Source: Selaginella moellendorffii (Eukaryota > Plantae > Lycopodiophyta). From it: a stretch of DNA of 64,000 bases. The first letter of the stretch is position 1. Every line of letters starts with the position of its first letter. The notes beneath the pieces are model-generated. The model worked only from the letters and a program-made list of their open reading frames with translations, did no database searches and was not told where the DNA came from. Both the position numbers and the translations under genes were made by a program. The stretch is from the NCBI RefSeq assembly GCF_000143415.4, contig NW_003314268.1, forward strand, positions 1,069,247 through 1,133,246. Direction: 5' to 3'. This document shows positions 12,841-50,690 of this stretch, piece by piece.

Positions 12841-12914
12841 GTCTGGGTGGTGTAGTTGGTTATCACGCTAGTCTCACACACTAGAGGTCTCCGGTTCGAA
12901 CCCGGACCCAGACA
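12841..12914 (+). tRNA. tRNA-Val(CAC)
   Basis: Acceptor gtctggg/cccagac, anticodon arm ctagt-ctcacac-actag, T-arm tccgg-ttcgaac-ccgga, A and B boxes, downstream T-run. Confidence 0.96.
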
Positions 12915-34103: not shown

Positions 34104-34263
34104 GAGTAGAAAGTGAAAGTAAAGAGTTTACTACGGTGTGGTAAAACGTGAGACCGCCAAGTAACTAAAAGGACGGTACGGTATCGTGAAAGCCAGGCGC
34201 GTGAGAGAGAAGAGAGCTAGGCTAGAATTTGCGGGAGAGAGCGAGAGCGCGAGAGCGAAAGCG

Positions 34264-35200
34264 ATGGCGCAAGCAATGGAGCTGCCGGCGATGCCAACGG
34301 AGGCGAAGCTCTTCGGCAAGTGGAGCTATGGCGATCTTGCGGAGGTTTTGTGGAATTTCTTGCTTCTTGCTGCCGCCGGTCGATCGATCGATCGATCGAT
34401 CGATCTGATGATCTGCATTGTTTCTTGCTGGATCGCAGATCGAAGACATGAGCCTCGAGGACTACATCGCCGTGAATGGCCACAAAGTGGGAAGCTTTGT
34501 CCCTTGCACCGCCGGGCGCTACTCGAGGAAGCGATTCAAGAAGGGGCGGTGCCCGATCGTGGAGAGGTGCGTGCCCGAAATCTCCCTCGATCTTGATCTT
34601 GGCAAGATTTCTCTCGATCGATCAAGTCAAGCGATGTTCTTGATCTCTCTGTGTCTGATCGCCAGGCTCGTCAACGTGCTCATGTTCCACGGCCGCAACA
34701 GCGGCAAGAAGGTCATGGCGGTGAGGATCGTCAAGTACGCGATGGAGATTATCCATCTCCTCACGGATGAGAACCCGATCAAAGTGGTCCTGGACGCCAT
34801 CCAGCACTGGTATGGAACGCGCATTTCTTGGATAGAAGTTCTTTTCGGTGTGCCTGATCGATCTTTCCAGCGCTCCTCGCGAGGAGTCGGTGAGCCTGGT
34901 GACGAGAGGCGTCGCCAGGCGCAGCTCCGTGGACACCTCGCCGCTGAGGAGGGTGAATCAAGCCCTGGCCTTCATCGCCACCGGCACGAGGGAGAGCGCA
35001 TTCAAGACCGCCAAGCCCATCGCCGAGTGTCTGGCGGACGAGCTCATCAACGCCGCCAAAGGATCGTCCAACAGGTGAAAGAGATGAGAGATTCAAAGCC
35101 TCCTCCTCTTCTTCTTGTTCGACTGGGGGCGATCTTTGCTTGCAGCTATGCGGTGAGGAGGAAGGATGAGATCGAGCGCGTCGCCAAAACCATGCGATGA
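34264..35200 (+). CDS. RPS5: 40S ribosomal protein S5 (uS7), divergent paralogue, 5 exons
   Basis: [68 protein letters not shown]. All introns are GT-AG and in frame. Confidence 0.92.
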
Positions 35201-35899
35201 GTGGAAAGCTCGATTCAAGGTCTTTGATTTCGTTCTTCGCTTGACTAATGATATTTTGGATACCCTATTTTCTATTTTCCCGTTGTGGCGAGAGAGCCAA
35301 AAAGATTTCTAAGTATGAAAACTGTGTTCTTTGGGTGCTCTTGGAGGCGAGCTTGCCGCGACCGCGCCTTCAAAGAGATAAAGTAAGGGCCTCCCAAGGT
35401 CGTGCTTGAGCCTCGATGGTGCTGGAGCAAAGCCCTGGCTGCGTTCTTGGATAAAATGTGGGAGTGTGAGGATGATTACATGGTTTTCATTCAGCGGCGT
35501 GGAAGCTTTGGCTGGCGGATGGGAAGTGATAGAGCAAACCCTGGCTATGGCGAACTAGGTCGCTGTTTGAGGGAAATTGGAAGCGGTGCGGCAGTGGCGG
35601 TGGTGGCGGCGGTGGGCGGGGTGGCAAGGAAAAGATCTCCATCCCTGAGCGACCAGGAGATGATCCGGCTGCACGGCGAGGTGATCCGGGCGGAGGGCGT
35701 GCTGAGATTCTAGTGGACCTGGAGCAGGCGGTGTCGCCAGAGCCACTGAGGACGAAAATGCGCGAGGGATCATCAAGATCTCACGGAGACTTAGAATTCT
35801 TTTACTGTCTCGCCACATGTTTTCTAAAGCTTAACGAGTCTTTATACAAGTTTTCTAAAGCTTGGAAGTCTGTCTAGATTGTGGCATGATTATGGTTTG

Positions 35900-38800
35900 A
35901 AATTTGGTTTGATCAAGGTGAAACATACTCACTGAAATTCACTGAAAATTAGGCATCTGAATATCTCTTGGAAATTTGTTTGCTTTTGCATATGCCTTCA
36001 AGACAAAAAGTATATTTTATTATATTTTAAATAGTTACTAATAAATAAGAATTGAACTTATATTATTTGCTCTAATACCACATGTAACACACTCTATTTC
36101 TCCCTTTAAACTAACTATAAAAAAACAAGATAATTAAAAACTATTTGATCCATATATATCCTAAAATTCCCAAGATTCAAAAGATTCATAACTAAATTTT
36201 AATAAATTGATCTATTTTTGGGTTTTATCCTATATAGAAAGCATCAATAGCAAGAAAGTGGAGAGTCTTTTGTTATTACTAACTGCCACTCACTAAAGGG
36301 AATTCGTCGATATCGGCCAGGATTTCAAAAGTTTTTTAATCAATATTTATCTTCTAAACAATGCATTAAATTCTCTATTTCTCTATTCTTTTGATGCAAG
36401 TGTCAAAAGTGAAATAAATCATCATAAAATCCAACAATATTTTGTGACTCAAAGATCAAATTATATCATACATAATATTTTAATAGTTAACTAAATTTAT
36501 GTCATATATACTAAACTTATTTAGTTTTCTGACTAAATTCAGCAGAATATAATAGATTTACAAGAATTAAAAGTTATTTGTGATTATATTATAAATATTT
36601 ATAAAAAAGTATAAATACAAACATAATTACTACCATGAATTATATACCAACATTACATTGTTGTATTTAAATTTTAAATAAAATTCATAAAGAGATTTTT
36701 CAAAAATCATAAAATACAGCAAAAAAATATGAATTTTAATAACACATAAAAATTCTATATTAAAACTTATAACTAGGTATATTATATTGAAATTATTAAC
36801 TAGTTAATATAAATCTTGTTAACAATTATGACTAAATGTTTGAAACTTAAAGATATTTTTCTTTCAACCTAAAGCAATACAACATAACCATGGTATTTTA
36901 TTAATTGCATACTATAATTGAAATTTTTGAAAATTAAAAACTGATAAATTTTTTTATTGAGTTTAACTGACAAATTTTCATGTATCATATTATTAAAGAA
37001 ATTCTTCTTAAGGAAATTAAATTAATTATTTCATATTGCTAATTTGAAAATGTAAATAATATAATTATTTATATAAACTTATATAAAGTACATTAAATGT
37101 ATTGTAAAGATGAAATATTGAATTTTTTTTTACAATTGTCACTTTGATAGATGCAAGGTTTACTTTATAAAATTGAAAAAATTAAATTTTTTTAACATAC
37201 TGAACTTTATCAAATAAAAAATAGATTTATATATAAAAAATATCAAAAGTAAAATTTTAAATTATTCAAAAGTACAAATAAATAAATAAATAAATAAGTA
37301 ATAAAAAAAATAATTTAAAAAATAAGTTAAAAATTAGAATAATAATAAAATTTTACCTTAAACTATGTTTTCCTTTTTCAGAATTTCACTTATATTAATT
37401 ATTAAAGTTATAAATATAATAAAAATAAATTTAAACTAAATTTAAGCCACTCAGCAAATGAATGAATATGAAAATGGGTATTTTCATTAATTTTAGATTA
37501 AATTTCAAATTTTCTTTTAGTTAATGTCTATCTATTTAATAACCTCACAAGTATATATTAATTTTTTTAAATTCTTAATTAATTTGTGCTATTAGTAAAA
37601 TGAATAATTTTAGAGTCATTATTTTATTGTGACTTAAAGTTAAAGTTGAATTTTAAATTTAAACTATTCTTTTAGAACTTCAAAACATACATTAAAAGAG
37701 TCTACTGACATACTCTAAAAGATTATCATTGCTTAGCTTGAGTTAGACTATCTCTAACTTTATTTTTTTGTGGTTTGCTACCACCCTAGAAAGAAAAAAA
37801 AAGTTAAACTTTTTGTAAAAAAAGAAAATGTGTAATAAAAATTTAAGTTAAAATGATATAGTGGTGTATACTCTTCCTTAATATTAACCTAATATCTCAT
37901 TATCTACACAATAAATCTGGAAATTGTAAAGAAAAGGAACATAAACTAGCTAAATTATAAAAGTTTATTAATGCATTTATCCATTACAAAATTGAAACTA
38001 ATTTTTTTATCAAGTTTAATTGACCAAAGTTCATGTTTTATATTCATAAGAGCAATTGTCATAAAGGAAATTTAATTAATTATTTTATATTATTAATTTG
38101 CAAATGTAAATAATATATTTTTTCATATGGAGTTATATATTATATGGTATATGTTGTGATCATAAAACACTAAAATTATTTACTATTACTACCATGATAA
38201 ATGCAAGCTTTGTTTTATAGTATTAGCAACAATCAAAACTTTTGATATACTTAACTTTATCAAATAAATAATATGGTTTGATATATCGCACTCGTGATTT
38301 GTAGCTGATTGACAAGTGCCCCAGAGATCAGATCTAACTATGCAAAGTGAAGAAGCTTTATACCATATACTAAAAATTAAATTTTCAAAATTTATATTTA
38401 TAAGCTTAATTAAGTAGTATAAAATAAAATAACTAACAATGAAGCAAAACTTTAGAAAAGTAACTAAAAAAATAATATTATAATAAAATTTTACCTTAAA
38501 CTATTCTGTCCTTCTAGAATCAAATAATAGAAGGAAATTTAAGTTATAATTAAGAAAGTTTAAATATATTTTTAATATATGCAAAACAATATTTTAATGA
38601 TGTGGAAAGCAACTTCAAGAGCTGATTAATAATAATATTCACCATAATATTTCTTGTTTATATATACATGTAAATTTTCTTTAAAATAAATCTAGTAATT
38701 GTTATTTTAAAAAATTCTTACTTTTTATGATCTCAGTATTTTTAATAATTGTTTTTATTTTGGTTCATAGTGGTCAAAAGACCTACTTATTTCCATAGTT

Positions 38801-39166
38801 AATCTATAAGAGATATTACATAAATTGTTTAAATTTAAATGTTTATATATATCTTTGATAAATATTATTAGAAATACCAATAATGATATTAGTTTAACAA
38901 CTAAAACTAATTTTTTTATCTGAACTAGTTATAAAAAAATTCAAAATAACTAGAAAAAGTTGATAATTTCCTGTGCATTACGTGCAACAATGCTGTACTT
39001 GCTTAATAGTTCAAATTAAAGTTTATAATTGTAAACATGTTTATAATTTATAAACACAAGATTAATCATATTACATAACACCCATTAGATCATAGAATAG
39101 GTTGAATATACTAGAAAGTGTTTAGAAAAGTTTTTAAATTATAAACATGCTTATAAATTATCAATT
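35900..39166. repeat. Extremely AT-rich decayed repeat block with internal direct duplication
   Basis: No ORFs. About 37000-37400 resembles about 38050-38520. The right end (39010-39166, continuing at 44177-44290) is the repeat family seen again at 47570-47800 and 48440-48720. Confidence 0.65.
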
Positions 39167-39340
39167 TGTGAGGGCCAAGTGTACGGCTACGATGCCGTAT
39201 ACTAATATTAGCGTAGTGGATTTTGGTAGCCGTCGGATTGGTTTTAATCCGGACCACTCGCTCCTGTATATAAGCTAGGGTTTTTGGGTTAATTGATATG
39301 CACATTTCTGTATTCCCTTTCCATATTCCATGCACTCACA
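39167..39340 (+). repeat. 5' LTR
   Basis: tgtgagggcc...gcactcaca with terminal inverted TGTGAG/CTCACA and a TATATAA box. Confidence 0.97.
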
Positions 39341-39341
39341 T

Positions 39342-39357
39342 TGGTGGAGATGAGGGG
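39342..39357 (+). other. Primer-binding site complementary to the tRNA-Ala 3' end
   Basis: tggtggagatgagggg directly after the LTR; tRNA-Ala ends ...CAUCUCCACCA. Confidence 0.8.
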
Positions 39358-39573
39358 CACCTTTGATTGTCCCTGGGGAGTGCTTGGATTTGGGATTTCG
39401 GTTTAGATCTAGCTTTTGCATTGTCTAGATCTAGCTTTTTCCATTTCCTTTCTTTTGTTCTTTCCTTTCAGGATTTTGGTTTAGATCTAGCTTTTTGCAT
39501 TGTCTAGATCTACCATTTCTTTCTAGCTTTTTGTCATTTCTCTTCTTTTGCTCTTTCTTTCTCATTCATTTTC

Positions 39574-40506
39574 ATGGCCGATCCGCAATCTCCTCCTTTG
39601 ACTCTAGAGCAACAGTTGGTTCAATTGCTTGATGCTATGCGCCTGCAATTGAACAACCAAACTCAGTTGATGGCGGCGTTCACGGCACATGGTACAACTC
39701 CTCCTGCTTTTGGTGCCAATCCTCGCGTTCGGCCGGAGTTCTTTCGTGGGAATCCTGGGGATGATGTGTACCATTGGTTCGATCACTTCACGGTGATTGC
39801 CACATATCATTCTTGGGATGATGCTCGGCGTTTGCGTGAGTTCCCCACATGTCTTCAAGGGATGGCATTGCAGTGGTACAATGGATTGAGCGCAGCTACT
39901 TGTGGCGATTGGAGTGTTCTTCCGGATGTCTTCAAACGCGCCTTCGGACACGCCGACGATTGTGATGATGCCTTCCAACAATTGCATCGTCTTCGCCAAG
40001 GGCCATATGAGTCGGTGATGCAATTTGGCGTTCGTTTCCGAAGTCTTTTGCTTCGTGCGGAGCCAAATATGTCGGAGCGGATCAAGCTAGGAATGCTGTG
40101 GCCAGCACTTCGTCAAGATCTTGTCGGACTTGTGCATGCACTTGCTCCTGCCACTCTTGACGATGCTCTTCGTTTGGCACAACGTTATGAGACGTCGCCT
40201 CTTCCACTTCTTGCTACACGTCCTTCAGCTCCACTTCCTATGAGTGATGGTCCTGTTCCCATGGAGGTTGATGCTGCTGCTACTCGAGTCCAAGGACAAG
40301 GGCGAGGACGTGGTCGTGGCCGTGACATTCGTTGCTGGGCGTGTGATGAAGTTGGTCATACTTATCGGCGTTGTCGGCGCTTTCCGGATTGGCGACCTCC
40401 ATTTCCTGGGTGGAGACCTTGGCGTCAGCAACGTCCCGTTGGTGCTGCTGCGGTGGAAGGTTTGGATACCGAGGTGCATTCGGGAAACGAGGAGTCGCAC
40501 GAGTAA
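39574..40506 (+). CDS. gag: Gag
   Basis: 310 aa. Retrotransposon gag helices, LRQGPYESV, PVPMEVD, zinc knuckle CWACDEVGHTYRRC. Confidence 0.93.
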   Translation: MADPQSPPLTLEQQLVQLLDAMRLQLNNQTQLMAAFTAHGTTPPAFGANPRVRPEFFRGNPGDDVYHWFDHFTVIATYHSWDDARRLREFPTCLQGMALQWYNGLSAATCGDWSVLPDVFKRAFGHADDCDDAFQQLHRLRQGPYESVMQFGVRFRSLLLRAEPNMSERIKLGMLWPALRQDLVGLVHALAPATLDDALRLAQRYETSPLPLLATRPSAPLPMSDGPVPMEVDAAATRVQGQGRGRGRGRDIRCWACDEVGHTYRRCRRFPDWRPPFPGWRPWRQQRPVGAAAVEGLDTEVHSGNEESHE

Positions 40507-43500
40507 TGGAGGGACCTTGCGCGAATAAGTTAGTGACCCCTCCATCTTTCTTTCGGGAGTATCATCAAGGGGTTCACTCGGCACCGGTTCATCCAGTGTT
40601 TACTTTCCAAGCTCGTTTTTATAACAAGAGGTTTCCTATTCTTCTCTCCATGTTGGTTGATACAGGTTTGAGTTTATCTTCTATTGCTCGACCTGTTGCC
40701 ACACGTTGTCGTCTACACTTGCGTCGTGCGACGGATCCAGTTTTCATTCTTTATGGCAACGGCCGTACACATGCATGTGCACGAGATGAGGCGGACCTGG
40801 TTGTGTGTGTGGGCGATCTCGAGCTTGAGTTGCAGTCGTTGCGGGTGGTGCCGAGTCAAGCTTTTGACCTCATTCTTGGTATGGATTGGTTGCAGCACAA
40901 TCATGCCAAGTGTGACTTTGAGGCTTTTCCCCCTTGTCTCATACTTCCTTATGTTTCATCCATTCCTCTCACTTTTGTACCTCTTCGTCCCTCTACTTCT
41001 ACCTCTGCTTCCATTACTTTTGTTCCCCCATTATTTCCTCTTGTGTTTCCATCTTGTTCTGCTCTTCCCTTTTCCGATCCCTCTGATGATCTTTGTGTTG
41101 CAGCTGTTGATCAGCTCATGAAGGAGTATTCTGATCTCTTTGAATTTGACCTATCGTCTGGGGCCAAGATTGCCACACGTCATCCCATTCCAACCGGGGA
41201 TGCTCGTCCAATCAAGGTTCCTGTTCGTCGTCGGTCACCCAAGGAGATCAAGATTTTACGTGCAAACGTCAAGGAGATGTTGGAGAAGGGTGTTATTCGG
41301 AAGTCGCGGAGTCCTTGGGCATGTGAACCTCATCTTGTGACGAAGCCTGATGGGAGTATTCGTTTCTGCATCGACTATCGTCCGTTAAATGAAGTGACGA
41401 TCCCGGACGTGTACCCTCTTCCTCACACTGCTGATCTCTTGGATCGTCTGGGGCGAAGTCGTTGGTTCACCAAGCTAGATCTTGCTTCTGGGTATTGGCA
41501 AGTACCGATGGCTGAAGACGATATTCCTAAGACTGCTTTTCGTACACCATTTGGTTTGTACGAGTTTTTGGTGATGCCGTTTGGTTTGAACAATGCTCCA
41601 GCAACTTTTCAGCGAATGATGGACGAGGTTCTTTGCGATATGCCAGAGGTGACGGCTGACTTCATTGATGATGTCTTGATCCACTCGGAGGGGACGTGGG
41701 AGAAGCATGTTCGTGATGTTTGTAAAGTGTTGGATCGGCTACGCGACGTTGGTTTAAAGCTGAAGCGGTCGAAGTGCGTGTTTGGGTCCAAGGACACAAC
41801 TTATCTTGGGTACCGTATTTCTCGTGAGGGTTTGCAAGTTGATCCTGACAAACTTGTGGCTGTTCTAAAGTTCCCTACTCCGAAGTGTGTGAATGATGTG
41901 CAGCGCTTTTTGGGTAAGGTGCAGTATCTCGGTCGTTTTGTGGATCATCTTTCCGATCGCACTTTACCATTGCCAGTGTTGCTGAAGTCATCAACGTCAT
42001 CTTTCATCTGGTCTCCCGATTGTGAGCGGGCGTTCGTGAATCTCAAAGAGCTATTGACGACTCCTCCGGTTTTGGCATATCCTGACTACACTCGACCTTT
42101 TATTTTGCGCGTGGATGCTTCTGACATTGGTCTTGGAGGTGTGTTGATGCAAGAGAGCTCGAGTGTGCCTAGTCAGCGCCATCCCATTGCATACATAAGC
42201 CGTACATTACAACTAGCGGAGATGAACTACTCCACGACGGAGAAGGAGTGTTTAGCAGCAGTCTGGGGTTTCGAGAAACTTCATGCCTATCTACATGGTT
42301 CTCGGACGTTACTTGAAGGTGACCATGCTGCTGTTACTTCATTATTGAAGCGGAAGAACCTGGTTGGTCGTACGGCTCGATGGGCTTTGAAGCTTCAGAT
42401 ATATGATTTCGATGTTGTTCATCGCCCAGGGAGTTCTATGGCTGATGCTGATGCCCTTTCTCGAGCTCCTCTTCCTTCTCCACTCACTTCTCATGTTTCT
42501 GATGAACCTGTTGTTCCAGCATCTGTGGATTTTCTAGATGAGGATTCTGTGCCGTCGGCGGTTGCTGTCCTTGACGTTCAGTGTCCACAGGGCGTAGAGC
42601 AAGATCTACCTTCTCTGGATGAGGTTCGCGAGGCTCAAAAGATTGAGCCGTGGATTCGAAGGCTTCGAGATGGGTTTGAGAATCCTGCATCACTTGCTGA
42701 TGACTTGCCTTTTCGGCATTTACATTCTCAATATCGCCTTGAAGATGGCCTTCTTTATTTTGTGGGGACGGATCCTGATGCTCATTTACGGCTGGTGGTG
42801 CCTTCGGTGTTTATTCCGCGGTTTCTCCATGCCTACCATGATTCTCCTATTCTAGGTGGGCATATGGGACACCGTCGTGTCACCGAGAAGTTGCGCAGAT
42901 CTTTCTATTGGCCAGAGATGCGACGTGATATTATCCGGTATGTGCGTAGCTGCGTTTGGTGCCAAGCTCGTAATACTCCCCCTTGTGCTGCGGAAGGACG
43001 GTTGGAGTCAATTGCAGTTTCTCATCCGTTTGAGTTGGTGGCGTTTGATCTTATGGGACCTTTTCCGCGATCGACTGCTGGCAATGAGTATGTTATTATT
43101 GCTTCTGACTACTTGACTCGTTGGGTGGAAGTTGGTGCTCTTGCTAGTGCCTCTGCAACTGCTGTTGGATACTTCCTCCTCAATCGAGTGGTGTTCCAGC
43201 ATTCTTGTTCAGAACGGATTCTTTCGGATAATGGTCCTGCATTTATGGCTGAGGTATTTCATGTTTTGACATCTCGGTTGGGGATACGCCACACTTTTAC
43301 GAGTGCTTATCATCCACAATCAGACGGTCTGGTGGAACGGCTCGTTCGGACATTCAAAGGGATGATTGCGAAGTATGTGAACTTTCAACATTCGGATTGG
43401 GATGGTTATTTGCCGTCTCTTCGGTATGCTTATGTCACAGGGGTGCAGAGTTCTGTTGGTGCTTCACCATATAAACTTCTATATGGTCATGATCCAATAT

Positions 43501-43970
43501 TACCAATAGAGCTAGGTTTACCTTCGCGATTGCCACGAGCTCCTGATGCTAGGTCGTGGGATCAATATTTGACAAGCATTCTTCCACTTGTCCGAGCAGA
43601 GTCTGCTGAACACTTAGGCCGCGTACAAGTGGGACAACAACGGCGCTACAATTCCCATCATTGTCCACCAGCGGAGTACAAAATGGATGATTTGGTGTTA
43701 GTCCGTTTTCCCCATCTTACGGTACGTGGTTTATCTAAGGGGCTCCTTGCGCAGTGGAAAGGACCGTATCGGGTGTTGCGGCAAGTTGGACCACAAGTTT
43801 ATAAGGTTCGGCATGACGTTCAGCAGGCTGATCCTCCGGAGATTGTGCATGTGCAGCGGTTAAAACGCTTCATACAGAGGGATCAGGAGCAGTTAATACC
43901 GTCTACAGATCCACCGATGCCTCCTCCTGACGTTCCTCCAGATCCCGGCCCATCTACAAGAGAACCCTGA
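40482..43970 (+). CDS. pol: Pol (protease, RT, RNase H, integrase) in the -1 frame relative to gag
   Basis: LVDTG, RFCIDYRPLN, MPFGLNNAPATFQ, FIDD, DAS..GLG, YSTTEKECLA, HHCC, D,D(35)E core, WKGPY. The ORF is uninterrupted. Confidence 0.96.
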   Translation, partial: GKRGVARVMEGPCANKLVTPPSFFREYHQGVHSAPVHPVFTFQARFYNKRFPILLSMLVDTGLSLSSIARPVATRCRLHLRRATDPVFILYGNGRTHACARDEADLVVCVGDLELELQSLRVVPSQAFDLILGMDWLQHNHAKCDFEAFPPCLILPYVSSIPLTFVPLRPSTSTSASITFVPPLFPLVFPSCSALPFSDPSDDLCVAAVDQLMKEYSDLFEFDLSSGAKIATRHPIPTGDARPIKVPVRRRSPKEIKILRANVKEMLEKGVIRKSRSPWACEPHLVTKPDGSIRFCIDYRPLNEVTIPDVYPLPHTADLLDRLGRSRWFTKLDLASGYWQVPMAEDDIPKTAFRTPFGLYEFLVMPFGLNNAPATFQRMMDEVLCDMPEVTADFIDDVLIHSEGTWEKHVRDVCKVLDRLRDVGLKLKRSKCVFGSKDTTYLGYRISREGLQVDPDKLVAVLKFPTPKCVNDVQRFLGKVQYLGRFVDHLSDRTLPLPVLLKSSTSSFIWSPDCERAFVNLKELLTTPPVLAYPDYTRPFILRVDASDIGLGGVLMQESSSVPSQRHPIAYISRTLQLAEMNYSTTEKECLAAVWGFEKLHAYLHGSRTLLEGDHAAVTSLLKRKNLVGRTARWALKLQIYDFDVVHRPGSSMADADALSRAPLPSPLTSHVSDEPVVPASVDFLDEDSVPSAVAVLDVQCPQGVEQDLPSLDEVREAQKIEPWIRRLRDGFENPASLADDLPFRHLHSQYRLEDGLLYFVGTDPDAHLRLVVPSVFIPRFLHAYHDSPILGGHMGHRRVTEKLRRSFYWPEMRRDIIRYVRSCVWCQARNTPPCAAEGRLESIAVSHPFELVAFDLMGPFPRSTAGNEYVIIASDYLTRWVEVGALASASATAVGYFLLNRVVFQHSCSERILSDNGPAFMAEVFHVLTSRLGIRHTFTSAYHPQSDGLVERLVRTFKGMIAKYVNFQHSDWDGYLPSLRYAYVTGVQSSVGASPYKLLYGHDPILPIELGLPSRLPRAPDARSWDQYLTSILPLVRAESAEHLGRVQVGQQRRYNSHHCPPAEYKMDDLVLVRFPHLTVRGLSKGLLAQWKGPYRVLRQVGPQVYKVRHDVQQADPPEIVHVQRLKRFIQRDQEQLIPSTDPPMPPPDVPPDPGPSTREP

Positions 43971-44002
43971 CGGCCTTCCATTATTCCAAGAGGAGGGGAT
44001 GA

Positions 44003-44176
44003 TGTGAGGGCCAAGTGTACGGCTACGATGCCGTATACTAATATTAGCGTAGTGGATTTTGGTAGCCGTCGGATTGGTTTTAATCCGGACCACTCGCTCC
44101 TGTATATAAGCTAGGGTTTTTGGGTTAATTGATATGCACATTTCTGTATTCCCTTTCCATATTCCATGCACTCACA
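44003..44176 (+). repeat. 3' LTR
   Basis: Copy of 39167-39340, preceded by the polypurine tract aagaggaggggatga. Confidence 0.97.
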
Positions 44177-45655
44177 AATTCAAAATTAATTTAAATGAAT
44201 AACAACCATTAGGTGGTAGAATATCCTAGAATATCCAAGCTTATTCTAGGTATATCTACTACCACCCTACAGGTTTTCTTAAGCAAACTAATTAAAAAAA
44301 TGTAAGATATTCCGTAAAACTATATTAAAGTTGTTAAACTTTTAATTTAAAATGCTTATATCTAGAAAATGAATTATGATTATAATTTTTCACCAAGATA
44401 TAATGTTTAGTGAGACAAATAAGTATATAAAATATTAAAAATGTTGCTATATTCTAATAAAAATGTTTGAAGATAAACAAATAAGAAGATTATACAACTC
44501 ATCTATGGTTTGCCATATCTAAAGTTTTTTATATAGTAGTCAGCTTTTAGTAGCATAACTAATTCTTAATCTTATTTATCAGTTGATCTGCTGCACAGTT
44601 ATCAGTTATTTTGCAAACTCCAGTACTAACTCTTTCAATGATCTTCCTCAAACTTCGGACAAAGCCCAATAAGCATATTTCTATGACAACTTTTACTGGA
44701 TTGAACACCTTGGATTCTCAAGAAAATCCACTTCTTTATGGAACATAGCCTGTGGGCACTCCCTCTCCCAGCTGTGACCAAGTTCCCATCCAAAAAGCAG
44801 CTACATGTGAGCTCGACGTGAGCCAGAGCAGCGAGTCTATCAAGTTGGTGAGCTCCCATGCCGAAGGTCCCCTTTGCGGCCAAGAAGAGAGGAGACAGCG
44901 TGTGGGAGAGCATGGTAAGCTAGAGACCCGTCCATCCAAGAAAATCACATGCTCTCTCCTCTTTCCAATCCCCACCTCAAAAAGGATAGAGCAGATAGAT
45001 TCATTAACAGACAGCATTATACAGCCTCTACTCGGAGGTAACGCCATCAAAACCTCTGGCCAACATGGCTGGCACATTCCTCGTATAGATGGCCCAGACC
45101 CTCCACGGCCAAGAGTAGTTCAATGCCATCCATCACAGAATATTGGCCATGGCTCAGATTGATCGTCCCATTTCGTCCCATGAGCCCCTCCGGAGTATGC
45201 GGAGCCAGGTAACTTTGCATTCCTTTGCCAGTGAATGGCAAAGCTTTCCACTAGGCAATCTATGGCATCTCAACCGATCAAAAAAGGTAGCATGGAACTC
45301 CTAATGTCCAAACGAGAGTGATACATATGAGATGTTCGTTAATTGGCAAGCATTGCCAGCGCAAGCTTGCTGTGTCAAGATGGAAAGGATTTCGGAGCGG
45401 TGGACTACAAGCTAGTTTCCATAAAATCATTCTATCCCTCATTGCTAGCGCTGGAGCATATATACTGTACATTGTGTCTCAAAGGCCAGAAACAAACAAT
45501 TGAAGGAGATATTGTGAAAACTGAGGCTCTCGGCTAGAAATTGTTGAGCAAGAAATGGAGCTGCTGCAGATTCCAGAGGAGCAAACCTGTGTGTTCATCA
45601 CAGGGATGAAGCATTGCACGAAAGAGCATCACGGAGTCATAAGGATGAAACAAGC

Positions 45656-46483
45656 TCAAGCTGCAGAACGAGAAAATAAACGAGAGGAAGTTTTTTTTGA
45701 GGAGAGATAGATCACCTCGTTAGGGAGGAAGTCGGACTTAATTGGCTGCCGCTCGGGGGCCTGGCTGATCTCGGGGAAGCAGGGCAGACAAATGTACACC
45801 TCGTCCCTGATCACCTGATGATCCTTGCTCACGAGCCAAACCCAGCGGATGAGGTCGTGAGCCTTGAAAAGGATCGTGTGCCGCTCCATAAACATCTCCA
45901 CCATGAGCTTCATGCGATCCTCATTCAGTAAAACTTTCTCGTAGAACTCACGGTTGCCCGTCACAAAGACCTGATCAAACACCCAGTATCTGGGAGATAA
46001 AGAAGAAAATACTGAGCCGCAAGAAGTCGGACTTATTTGGCTGCCTCCACAGCTCCTTGCGATCCTCGTTCAGTAAAACTTTCTCGTAGAACTCGCGGTT
46101 GCCCGTCACAAACACCTGATCAAACACCCAGTATGATCAGCGGAAAAAAGACAACTTTTATAGCGTGCCAGCAGCGCAACGAGCTTGCTGGTTCGCGCGA
46201 ATGTATGAGAGTAGCGGAGGAAACATCCTCTCCTGCGCTTCCTTGTCCGCGATGCCAATCCTCTCAAACACCCACTCGCTGTAACCCTCGCAGAAATGCG
46301 AGAAAGGCCAGTGGTGCCATCCCGGCTGCTCCAAGTAGTTGACATCGGTGAAGAGCGCGCCATCGCCCAAGCATCCGCTTCACCCACAGGCCGAGAGGCC
46401 GCCCCTCCTCCTCCGCCGCGCTCGTCGTACGCCTCCTCGTCGCAAGCAAACTCATCGCCAGAATAGTGAAGGTTCTTCAGCAA
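45656..46483 (-). pseudogene. Fragmented gene of unknown family, with internal duplication
   Basis: Coding-like pieces in several frames (FTDVNYLEQPGWHHWPF..., NREFYEKVLLNEDRMK..VWLVSKDHQVIRDEVYICLPCFPEIS). 45920-45990 is repeated at 46065-46135. Confidence 0.55.
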
Positions 46484-47039
46484 CTCCTTCCGGTGTTGGT
46501 GTACACGATCCGATTCCTCGTGAGCCTTGACTGAGCTTGTAGATTGGGTGTTTCACACAGGAGATCTTCTGATCAGGCCACAAGTATGATAATCTGTGCA
46601 GATTCGGTCAGGTGCATGGCAAACTGTGGATCTCACATCAAATCCAGGAGCGCCTCCCTGATCTTGTTACCATCCCATCCCTGGCCAGCCGGTATTCTAC
46701 CACCCCAAAGCGTAATTCCTCACTCATGTATACAGCACTTGGACTCCATAAAGAAGCATACAAATCATCACAACTCAACAAGAAATTCAGCAAACACAAC
46801 CACATTAAAGACTGGGACACCCCATCTGCTAGTAGAAGTCACCACAACTTGACTGGAACTTGTGACACTCTACGTCACATAAAATGTATAGAAACTTTGT
46901 TAAAGTAAAGTGTGACGCTCCACATCACTACAACTAGCAAATTCCATGGACCCAGCTCATTCATTGCCCCTCATCTCCACCAAACATAGGGTGTATGCCC
47001 AAGCGAGATACATTTTAAGAGAAAAACTTACAGCACCAT

Positions 47040-49420
47040 ACATTTTCGAGATAACAAAATTTATCCAACAACAATGCAATCTTTAGTAATTAAGTTTTGC
47101 AAATCAAGGATTAGGATGACAGTACATTTATATATTTAAGTCATTGGTCCAGGGAGTCTTGTATCACATATTTGCACAATTGATCCAATAAGTTTATATA
47201 GCTATTGAGGTTGTGAAACTAAAATACTTTTTCAACAAATTATAAGATATAATCTTAGACAAAAAAAAATCCAATATCTCCACCAAATGTGAGAACTTTC
47301 AAAAAAGAGGTATGTTTAGATTACCCAAGTCTCATACTTATAATACAAATAATCAGTAGTTTACAAATGTTGGATCAGGTCTTTTTTTTGTGTTTATAAC
47401 ATCTAATTTTATTGCAAATAAGGGATGTTAGTATTGAAATTTTTTGGGTATTTTCAACTGTACTTATTGGTCAAAACATCTAAACTAACAATAGCTTAAC
47501 TTCAGAAAATAGGTAATTCACACTACAACCCATTAAATTTAAATTTCATAATTGAATATACCTTGTCTACAATGAAAATTTATAATTTTTGGTTTGCTTA
47601 AGCAAACCGACATAGTAGTGAATATACCTAAAATATGCTTTAATATTCTAGGATATTCTTCATTTATAGTAATTTTGTATTTATAATTTATAAACTTTCT
47701 TAAAAACTTTCTAGTATATTCTGTTTTATTTTACAATAAGATTAATCTTGTGTTTATAAATTACAAACATGCTTATAATTATAAACTTTTATCTGATCAA
47801 TTAGATTGATAAGTAAGAAAAACATTACTATTAAACAAACTAAACATTATTACATGCAACGCATAACAAATTATTAAAACTTTAAAGGATTGGCATTGTG
47901 GACAAGAAAGCCCAAGAGAGGATGTTTTCTCTGCTACTTTCGTACGTTCATGCGAACAAGCAAAGTCGTTATGCTCTTGGCACAGTAAGCTCAGTATTTG
48001 CTTCTTTATCTCCTGATACTGGGTGTTTGATCAGGAGTTTGGGACGGGCAACCGTGAGTTCTACGAGAAAGTTTTACTGAACGAGGATCGCATGAAGTTC
48101 CTGGTGGATACATTTATGGAGCAGCACACGATCCTTTGCAAGGCTTGCAACCTCATTTGCTGACGATCTCTACGATCCCTGTACTGTGGGAGACTGTCTA
48201 CCGCAGTGCCAGGAAAGGTCGGGTGTGGTTCGTGAGCAAGGATCATAAGGTGATCAGGGACGAGGTGTACATCTGTCTGCCCTGCTTCCCAGAGATCAGC
48301 CTGTGGAGGCAGCCAAATAGGTCCAACTTCCTTACTCAAGATTGCTGATTCTTGAAATATTATGGTGAACCACTTTTATATTATTAATTATTTCAATCAT
48401 TTAAAGTTTTAAGAATTTGTTAGTTCTACTTATTAATCCAATTAATCAAATAAAATTTATAATTATAAACATAATTTATAAACACAAGAGTAATACTATT
48501 TCATATCAACCATTAGATGGTAGAATAAAAAAGAATGTACTAGAAAATTTTTCAGCAATTTCATAAATTATAAATATATTATTAAACTATAAATACAAAA
48601 TTAAGATCTAAAAAATCTTAAAAATATAAATGAATAACAACCGTTGGGTGGTAGAATATCCTAGAATATCCAAGTATATTCTAGGTATATCCACTCCTAC
48701 AGGTTTGCTTAAGCAAACCAAAAACTATAAATTTTTGGGTATTATCATTAACCTTTACTAGAATAAATTAACTATAATTTTATTGTTAATATCTTGATAA
48801 ATATATTCATTACTAACTTCTTCACACACTATTATATTAGAAACAATTAGCTTATTATAATGTGTTATATCTCAAATAGTTGATGGAAATGCTAATTATC
48901 TTTAAAAACTACTAAATAGTTCATCTGAATTTCACCCAACAATTTTCACTACTAACATTCCTTATTTGCAATGAAATTAGATGTTGTATTGACATTATAA
49001 ACTTTTTTTGTTTAGTAAAATTCGTATGCATTGTATATCATCTATAGGAATTGCAAAGAAGTTATAATCAATAAAATTTCAAAATACAACCTGGACATCT
49101 CAAGAAAAAAGGACCTAATCCAACATTTGTAAACCTCTGATTATTTTTATTTTAAGTATGAGACTCCAGGGTTCTCACATTTGGTGGAGATTTTAGGTAG
49201 TTTTTTGTCTAAGAATATATTTTAAAATTCCTTGAAAAATTAATCTAGTGTCACAACCTTGATAGCTGTATATAGACTTATTACATCAATTGTGTCATAC
49301 AAGACTCTTTGGACCAGTTACTCAAACATAAAAATTTACTGTCATCCTAATCCTTGATCAGCAAAAGTTAATTACTAAAGATTATATTGTTGTTGGATAA
49401 ATTTTGTTATCTTGAAAACT
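47040..49420. repeat. Large imperfect inverted repeat (arms about 47040-47800 and 48440-49420) enclosing a gene fragment
   Basis: For example gataacaaaatttatccaacaacaat vs attgttgttggataaattttgttatc, and atctccaccaaatgtgagaac vs gttctcacatttggtggagat. Confidence 0.8.
47885..48345 (+). pseudogene. Inverted second copy of the 45730-46270 gene fragment
   Basis: DKKAQERMFSLLLSYVHAN and VWFVSKDHKVIRDEVYICLPCFPEIS match the minus-strand copy. Confidence 0.75.
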
Positions 49421-49784
49421 TGAAGCAATGCGTATTAAAATATAATTTAGAATGCTCCTAAATATATTTGGACTAAGAAAAAAAGGATTTCTAATTTAAA
49501 TCACACTGGGACAGTAGCTGAAATATAGGGTGGTGCCAATACTGATGAAGCTAATATGATGCTTAATCCCATGCTGCTAATATAAAAACTTGTAAACTCA
49601 AAGAATATTTTATTATGAGGCTCGAGAGGGAGTTATTATGAGGGCTCAAGATCAAAGTGTTCTTTGTTCAAAGATCTAGCTAGTTTAGTATATTCAAAAG
49701 CTTGTAAACTGTATATATTATGAAACTCCAACAATTTTGGCATGATTTTGTTAATCCAACCTATGATAATTAATTATATTTTTC

Positions 49785-50040
49785 AGTGAATATTAATATT
49801 TAATTTTCTAACTCAAACATAATATAAAATCTTAGAAAAAATAGGATACTTGATCATTTATTTTATTGGCTCCAATTTGCATAGGGTGTATGGAACAGGA
49901 ATCTTTGAATTAAACTCATGAGTGTAGATTTCACATGGCGGACCCAATAAAAAAAAGTACGGGTACCCTATTTTTTATATTGTGTTTTATTATGCTTGAG
50001 TTGAAAATTAATTTATATTTTCGAATATTAATATTCACTC
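49785..50040. repeat. MITE-like imperfect hairpin
   Basis: agtgaatattaatatt...aactcaaacataata...aaaaaatagg...ttttattgg mirrors ccaataaaa...cctatttttt...tattatgcttgagtt...aatattaatattcact. Confidence 0.6.
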
Positions 50041-50690
50041 CCAATAAGTGATTAAAGTAAGTTAGAAAAGATAATTAATTAACATTACTATTGTTGTTTT
50101 TATTAGATATAAAATTAATTACACAGTCTTATGGTAAGCCTTAAATGAATTTGCGTAGCTGGATAAATATCCTACCAAAATTGTACTAATAAATTTGGTG
50201 TCTCATAATAAAATATTCTATGAGTTTACAAGTTTTTATATTTGGGATTAAAACTCCTTATATGTTTAAGGGCTTAAAATCAAAGTGTTCTCTGCAAAGA
50301 TCCAAGCTGTTTGAAAACTTTCAGATTTTTACAAGTTTCATTAAAATCATCTTAATGGAGTGGGGAGCCCTCACCTTTAGAGGGCAAGAGGCCATAGTGG
50401 CAACATCATTCCCCACAATGGTCAGCATTCTGATATTAATTTCCAATGCTATTAATAACATGGATACTAAAAAGTATGAAACTTAGGTTGCTGCTTTAAA
50501 AATCTAAACGATTGGCAAATACCAAACATAAACTCCCTTTTTATTAAGCTAAATCTAGTTTAGAGCAAAAAGAAACCAAGCGTATATCCAAGGGGTGAAA
50601 AGATATTTTAGCACAGGATACGTTTAGGGCTCTTGAGGTGAGCATATTTTCTCCTGTGGTCTCTAGAGGTTTCTAAACATTGGTGCGTAG

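Follow-up and report, generated by a model that had tools for sequence, protein, structure and literature searches.

Ribosomal protein uS7 (RPS5) is located at the mRNA exit of the 40S subunit and makes contact with both eIF2-alpha and the initiator-tRNA complex. The beta-hairpin of uS7 is nearly fixed across eukaryotes, and single substitutions in the yeast hairpin alter the choice of start codon. A gene encoding a uS7 with an unusual hairpin is found in a 64,000-nt stretch of Selaginella moellendorffii DNA (contig NW_003314268.1; hereafter the window, numbered from its first nucleotide). Is this gene the RPS5 of the lineage, a decaying duplicate, or a second gene that is kept for a use of its own? 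The analysis described here identifies it as a real, selectively kept and unusually divergent paralogue, which is near-silent in the sampled sporophyte tissues.

The gene is comprised of five exons and four GT-AG introns of 94, 99, 61 and 71 nt, as established by a splice-junction test, and its 612-nt ORF encodes 203 amino acids (Table 1). The predicted product matches XP_002966189.2, '40S ribosomal protein S5 [Selaginella moellendorffii]', at 100%, and this gene model is already annotated as RPS5 in RefSeq. A literature search on the locus tags found no paper treating the gene. The protein cluster to which the product belongs contains XP_002982261.2, XP_002966189.2 and two older 194-aa models, SELMODRAFT_116250 and SELMODRAFT_85986. 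All the divergent strings quoted in the initial annotation, including FKTAKP, are present in the 203-residue product.

The assignment to the uS7 family is supported at several levels. Exon 3 and exon 4, each taken alone, match the Pfam family Ribosomal_S7 (PF00177) above the curated cut-off. In a phmmer search of the PDB with the full-length protein, the top matches are plant, fungal and animal uS7 with E-values down to 5e-79. Exons were joined solely for translation and for substitution counts; the searches used single exon frames or the database record. The product has the architecture of a eukaryotic-type uS7, namely an N-terminal extension with the KLF..W motif, a helical core, the beta-hairpin and a C-terminal helix ending in Arg, and it is collinear with 178 eukaryotic uS7 sequences, with no indel beyond residue 48. 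The KLF motif is preceded by 15 residues in the divergent copy versus 19 in the canonical one.

Table 1. Positions in the window of the divergent uS7 gene and of the elements that surround it
Feature	Position	Strand	Remarks
tRNA gene	12841..12914	+	Rfam RF00005, 64.5 bits
Spacer between upstream glucan-water-dikinase stop codon and uS7 ATG	34104..34263	+	160 nt; no telo-box
Divergent uS7/RPS5, whole coding span	34264..35200	+	XP_002966189.2 / SELMODRAFT_85986
Exon 1, M1-E27	34264..34344	+	Short acidic N-terminal segment; no organellar presequence-like extension
GATC/TCGA run, intron 1	34378..34410		
Exon 2, I28-R70, last codon split	34439..34566	+	PCTAGRY (near-invariant His replaced by Cys) and KKGRC; H50C, A63G
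GATC/TCGA run, intron 2	34590..34625		
Exon 3, up to split codon C118	34666..34809	+	Core helices; PF00177, E 2.2e-9; 74% identity to canonical copy
Exon 4	34871..35074	+	Beta-hairpin and next helices; PF00177, E 7e-13
Beta-hairpin coding stretch, C118-P142	34871..34943	+	H117 and first two bases of C118 at 34805-34809, in exon 3
Exon 5	35146..35200	+	C-terminal helix and stop codon; from the gene model
C-terminal tail codons, K-T-M-R	35186..35197	+	Yeast 222-225; K-A-N-R in canonical plant proteins; N202M
Spacer between uS7 and Cpn60/TCP1	35234..50155		~15 kb
AT-rich stretch	36001..38000		GC 0.19
Internal repeats of AT-rich stretch	36992..38285		~1050-nt period
Ty3/gypsy LTR retrotransposon	39167..44176		
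Ty3/gypsy terminal repeats	39167..39340, 44003..44176		174 nt each
Ty3/gypsy gag	39574..40506		Intact frame
Ty3/gypsy protease-RT-RNaseH-integrase	40371..43970		Intact frame

The assembly represents two haplotypes, and each locus is present in it twice. XP_002982261.2 differs from the 203-residue product by T12A and V74A only. It lies on scaffold GL377618.1 between the same neighbours as the gene in the window, and over 11 kb the scaffold aligns collinearly with the window, with 97.6% identity. This collinearity identifies XP_002982261.2 as the allele on the other haplotype. Intron 2 differs by 6 nt in length between the haplotypes, and one GATC/TCGA tetranucleotide run accounts for the difference; another run is present in intron 1.

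The canonical RPS5 of S. moellendorffii was found at a separate locus by a full-length search. It is SELMODRAFT_228853 / XP_002982486.1 (P0174), a protein of 204 aa, which is accompanied by a variant (P0231) differing by one residue. Both proteins bear the canonical strings, VAKANR among them, and those that the initial annotation had given for a plant RPS5 are exactly the ones of P0174. The two canonical loci (L002 and L003) have identical neighbours, AAR2, RINGv, DIRP/LIN9 and PPR, and are 97.8% identical; for these reasons they are alleles as well. The proteins listed by the searches correspond to two RPS5 loci per haploid genome, one of them canonical and the other divergent. The divergent copy is therefore a paralogue, as had been proposed, and the contrary case considered at the outset, that it is the only RPS5 and typical of its lineage, is excluded by the existence of the canonical locus.

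The two genes have a common DNA-level origin. Each of the four introns of the canonical gene interrupts the same codon, in the same phase, as its counterpart in the divergent copy, and exons 3-5 are of equal length in both; the preservation of frame, length and intron number noted initially was borne out. The identity of the intron positions and phases indicates a duplication at the DNA level, and the origin of the divergent gene as a retrocopy is ruled out by the four introns that it has in common with the canonical gene. The gene is an old duplicate of the cytosolic small-subunit uS7/RPS5 gene. In a free protein tree the divergent copy lies on a very long branch (3.98) at a basal position without resolution, a position typical of long-branch attraction. 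The tree that holds the divergent and canonical Selaginella genes together has a log-likelihood 5.1 above that of the free quick search and a p-AU of 0.67. An origin within the Selaginella lineage appears to be the best-supported placement, though not a proven one. Orthologues were sought in a collection of 5.8 billion proteins by word-index searches with exons 2-3, the full protein (P0121) and the exon-4 frame; the allele aside, no sequence was found that exceeds 66% identity over the full length or 68% in exon-4 fragments. This lack of orthologues is weak evidence of absence, as the sampling of other Selaginella species in the collection is uncertain.

The divergent and canonical copies are 65% identical in protein sequence and 67% identical in nucleotide sequence. 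Their codon composition also differs, third-position GC being 0.85 in the divergent coding sequence and 0.68 in the canonical one (L002 6001-6844). The extent of the protein divergence was measured against near-invariant columns, defined as those at least 95% conserved in the 178 eukaryotic uS7 sequences. The divergent copy keeps the residue in 70 of 84 such columns and replaces it in 14 (H50C, A63G, Q109K, D123E, T125V, R126S, G128V, Q136S, A137S, L152F, T167P, I189V, K190R and N202M). The median sequence replaces none, and a load of 14 is equalled or exceeded by just a few metagenomic (environmental) uS7 among the 178. In Tajima-type counts with six outgroups, the divergent copy has 43-50 unique changes and the canonical copy 6-11 (p at most 1e-5), and the rate of amino-acid change of the divergent copy is 5-8 times that of the canonical copy.

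The hairpin, which the initial annotation had described as rewritten, takes a larger share of these replacements than the remainder of the protein: 6 of its 16 conserved columns are changed, as against 8 of the other 68 (Fisher p = 0.02, the region having been chosen post hoc). In total, the hairpin of the divergent copy carries about 15 changes. The description has to be qualified, as the hairpin retains its length, its net charge (+1), the Glu of the first strand, the two adjacent Arg residues and the terminal V-D-x-S-P. The net charge of the entire protein, +10, is that of the canonical copy. AlphaFold2 models of both copies, computed with the same 50-sequence alignment, have a matching helix pattern and fold. 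The confidence in the hairpin is low in both (block means of 56 and 51 against 61 and 58) and does not discriminate between them.

The link of the hairpin and of the C-terminal tail to start-codon selection in yeast, stated in the initial annotation for the hairpin and the C-terminal helix, is confirmed by published genetics (PMC4513230, PMC5323038), and the Selaginella changes can be placed on the yeast protein by adding 22 to the residue number (residue 202 corresponds to 224 of the yeast chain; labels follow PMC4513230). In this numbering, which is used in the remainder of this paragraph, Glu144 and the C-terminal Arg225, which appear to be salt-bridged in the yeast 80S ribosome (PMC4513230), are both kept. 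So are Arg156, in contact with rRNA helix 23 close to the -3 context nucleotide, Arg157, a loop residue whose substitutions in yeast raise the stringency of start-codon selection, the hairpin residues Gly153 and Asp161, and Asp215 and Arg219, which face eIF2-alpha (PMC5323038). The changes in the hairpin are Asp145Glu, Thr147Val, Arg148Ser, Gly150Val, Gln158Ser and Ala159Ser. In the C-terminal tail, position 223 is Thr (Ser in yeast, Ala in plants) and Asn224 is replaced by Met.

Yeast rps5 mutants have been described at E144R, R148A/E, R156/R157 and R225K, and at D215, R219 and S223, and the natural Selaginella changes fall in the same elements. Substitutions of Arg148 increase the stringency against the near-cognate codon UUG, and those of Ser223 have the opposite effect (PMC4513230, PMC5323038). 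Of the sites examined in yeast, the Selaginella copy has lost Arg148 and is altered at 223, as it is at the adjacent 224, whereas it retains Glu144, Arg225, Arg156/157, Asp215 and Arg219. Each yeast allele was engineered as a single substitution, and its effect on UUG/AUG use and leaky scanning has been measured; in Selaginella ~15 hairpin changes are combined in one natural gene, with an unpredictable joint effect. We infer from this pattern, in which the scaffold and the eIF2-alpha contacts are kept and the loop and the tail are changed, a protein that would still be shaped by its ribosomal context.

The divergent copy is kept by purifying selection, which is relaxed relative to that on the canonical copy. 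Three observations lead to this conclusion: a low omega, constraint between alleles, and the survival of the gene structure. Comparison of the divergent and canonical genes gives a dN of 0.28, a saturated dS of at least 1.6 and hence an omega of 0.17 or less. Between the haplotypes, 4 of the 612 sites of the divergent coding sequence are different (two non-synonymous and two synonymous), as are 22 of the 819 sites in the introns and the 500 nt upstream; the coding sequence is less diverged than the non-coding DNA (Fisher p = 0.004). At the non-coding rate, 12.6 non-synonymous differences would be expected where two are seen (P = 3e-4), and this allelic non-synonymous divergence is as low as that of the canonical gene. 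Of the runs of a neutral simulation carried to a protein divergence of 30%, 0.3% retained an intact ORF with its start codon and all eight splice dinucleotides. The simulation introduced point mutations into the canonical coding sequence and ignored indels.

Expression of the divergent gene is very low. In the S. moellendorffii atlas (Table S2, bioRxiv 10.1101/744326), the gene, listed as Smo85986, has 0-1.9 TPM across 49 sporophyte samples. These do not include strobili, shoot apex, stems or stress treatments, and gametophytes are absent from the atlas. Values are 0-0.48 TPM in 39 aerial diurnal samples, 0 in roots (n=2), 0 and 0.34 in aerial roots and rhizophores (n=2), and 0.84, 0 and 0 in the root elongation zone (n=3); the highest values, 1.87, 0.85 and 1.04, are those of the root meristematic zone (n=3). 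The counts refer to one allele, and as reads may split between alleles the total for the gene may be about twice as high. The longest exact word common to the divergent and canonical coding sequences is 15 nt, so that the faint signal in the root meristem cannot stem from canonical mRNA reads mapped to the divergent gene. None of the four divergent and canonical gene identifiers was found in the supplement of a second comparative-transcriptome study. A contribution of the divergent uS7 to bulk ribosomes is excluded in the 49 sampled sporophyte samples. The initial annotation had named an unexpressed gene with dN/dS near 1 as the outcome that would speak against its proposal: the dN/dS part is excluded by the selection analysis, and near-absence of expression is what the sampled tissues have.

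The promoters of the two genes also differ. In plants, genes of the translation apparatus typically carry telo-boxes in their promoters. Two inverted telo-boxes (AAACCCTA) precede the canonical RPS5 in both haplotypes, at -51 and -22 relative to its ATG (L002 5949-5979; L003, same offsets), whereas no telo-box is found within 600 nt upstream of the divergent copy in either haplotype. The divergent copy has lost these promoter elements of the ribosomal-protein regulon. Elsewhere in the S. moellendorffii genome, the telo-box pair may mark the members of this regulon.

What, then, could a gene be for that is kept by selection and hardly transcribed in the sampled tissues? The specialised ribosome that the initial annotation had suggested is a hypothesis drawn from the residue pattern, and we favour a form of it which, taken as a whole, has about an even chance of being correct: a kept paralogue, competent for the 40S subunit, that is used at a low level or at restricted stages and alters the stringency of start-codon selection. 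The protein would still be able to sit in the 40S head, judging from the 70 near-invariant residues that are retained, the pair formed by the hairpin Glu and the C-terminal Arg, the helix-23 Arg-Arg pair, and the residues of the helix facing eIF2-alpha. The altered part would be the face at the mRNA exit channel and the E site, where Arg148, Gly150, Gln158 and the tail Asn224 (yeast numbering) are replaced. Its use is most likely at a low level, or in spores, gametophytes, gametes or the embryo, stages that lie outside the sampling. Ribosomes containing it would choose start codons at a different stringency; loss of the loop Arg makes yeast ribosomes more stringent against near-cognate codons, but the net effect of all the changes would be unpredictable. 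A narrower version, in which the protein is a 40S head component restricted to germline, spores or gametophytes and provides a natural 'altered-stringency' ribosome during reproduction, is decidedly unlikely. If true, it would imply altered use of start codons and upstream ORFs in reproduction and would make the gene a plant counterpart of the fly RpS5b, with changes, unlike those of RpS5b, at residues otherwise fixed across eukaryotes.

Several other explanations have to be weighed against this one. The divergent gene may be an ordinary uS7 backup that drifts under weak constraint, its hairpin changes having no designed consequence and selection only preventing harm or keeping a small dosage contribution. 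Very low expression, the loss of the regulon promoter elements, changes scattered over the whole protein and beyond the hairpin, and an omega clearly above that of the canonical copy all agree with such a spare, as does the Drosophila work that favours ribosome abundance over paralogue identity (PMC12704716). Less than 2 TPM, on the other hand, leaves little dosage to select on; the ORF, the eight splice sites and 83% of the near-invariant residues have outlasted synonymous saturation; and allelic non-synonymous divergence is no higher than in the canonical gene. We regard the spare as unlikely, though it deserves real weight. If it is correct, the gene still illustrates the extent of divergence that a core ribosomal protein can undergo without ceasing to be kept intact by selection. 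Somewhat harder to accept is a protein that works outside the 40S subunit by binding another RNA or protein partner. Its uncoupling from the ribosomal-protein regulon, its near-silence and the replacement of near-invariant residues, including His50 by Cys and the hairpin Arg and Gly, are what such a neofunctionalised copy might display. Glu144/Arg225, Arg156/Arg157, Asp215 and Arg219 are nevertheless kept, and they matter only in the context of the ribosome and of initiation; the length, the net charge and the predicted helices are unchanged, and there is no new domain or extension. An extra-ribosomal role is for these reasons rather improbable.

Much less credible is the replacement of a lost mitochondrial (or plastid) uS7 by this cytosolic-type copy. 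It has a precedent in tracheophytes, where a cytosol-to-mitochondrion swap is documented for uS8. The uS8 (RPS15a type II) of the plant mitoribosome is, like the present gene product, a divergent but intact extra copy of cytosolic type with no obvious presequence; it is, however, expressed and conserved across tracheophytes, whereas the uS7 copy is near-silent, has no detected orthologue and keeps its cytosol-specific contacts. Losses of mitochondrial rps7 are common, with no substitute known, and the uS7 copy is strongly divergent. To our knowledge, the mitochondrial genome of S. moellendorffii encodes no ribosomal proteins, which would also count in favour of a replacement. Yet TPM is 0 in most samples, where a mitoribosomal protein should be expressed everywhere. 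The N-terminus is not extended, and the protein keeps the residues that face eIF2-alpha, a partner found in the cytosol only. The protein collection yielded no orthologue, and hence none of the conservation to be expected across a clade that lost the organellar gene; in the available part of a 2026 pan-eukaryotic survey that includes three Selaginella species, no uS7 swap is given. Replacement in the mitoribosome is rejected, as the expression, the N-terminus and the cytosol-specific residues are all against it. Hardly any credence is left for a young decaying pseudogene or for the sole RPS5 of the lineage. Near-zero expression would suit a dead gene, but neither haplotype has a broken ORF or splice site, and the low omega with saturated dS, the rarity of intact neutral runs and the allelic depletion oppose decay; the canonical locus disposes of the sole-copy alternative.

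The favoured reading, a kept 40S-competent paralogue, can be compared with other duplicated RPS5 genes. In Arabidopsis there are two, RPS5A and RPS5B, which we take to be near-identical in sequence and both well expressed. All the angiosperm RPS5 sequences retrieved have the canonical hairpin, unlike the divergent Selaginella copy. A closer likeness is found in Drosophila, where RpS5b, like the Selaginella copy, accompanies a canonical uS7 gene, has an expression pattern of its own and encodes a clearly diverged protein. RpS5b is a gonad-enriched paralogue of RpS5a and the textbook case of 'paralogue switching' at the uS7 position (PMC6760144, PMC8887423), and it has been resolved in ovary ribosomes (PDB 6xu8). 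The two systems differ in degree. RpS5b is 76% identical to RpS5a, abundant in gonads and seen in ribosomes, whereas the Selaginella copy is 65% identical to its canonical partner, has near-invariant hairpin residues replaced, is almost silent in the sampled sporophyte tissues, and is known from gene and transcript data alone. A systematic study of 2025 on non-canonical ribosomal-protein paralogues in Drosophila, among them RpS5b, obtained no evidence that they have specialised functions (PMC12704716). The ability of such paralogues to tune initiation has been disputed since the Drosophila work, and the divergent Selaginella gene provides a ready-made test object for this question.

The divergent gene lies in a compact arrangement on its upstream side and in an expanded one downstream. 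The upstream gene, 160 nt away, ends in a PPDK_N domain, which identifies it as a glucan-water-dikinase (GWD). The spacer between uS7 and the downstream Cpn60/TCP1 gene is ~15 kb in the window versus ~4 kb in the other haplotype (L001 10964-15036), and the additional ~11 kb holds a retrotransposon and an AT-rich stretch with internal repeats (Table 1). The single match in the window at the Rfam gathering score is a tRNA gene. The retrotransposon, a Ty3/gypsy element located ~4 kb downstream of the divergent uS7, has terminal repeats that are 100% identical and frames that are intact, and looks like a very recent insertion.
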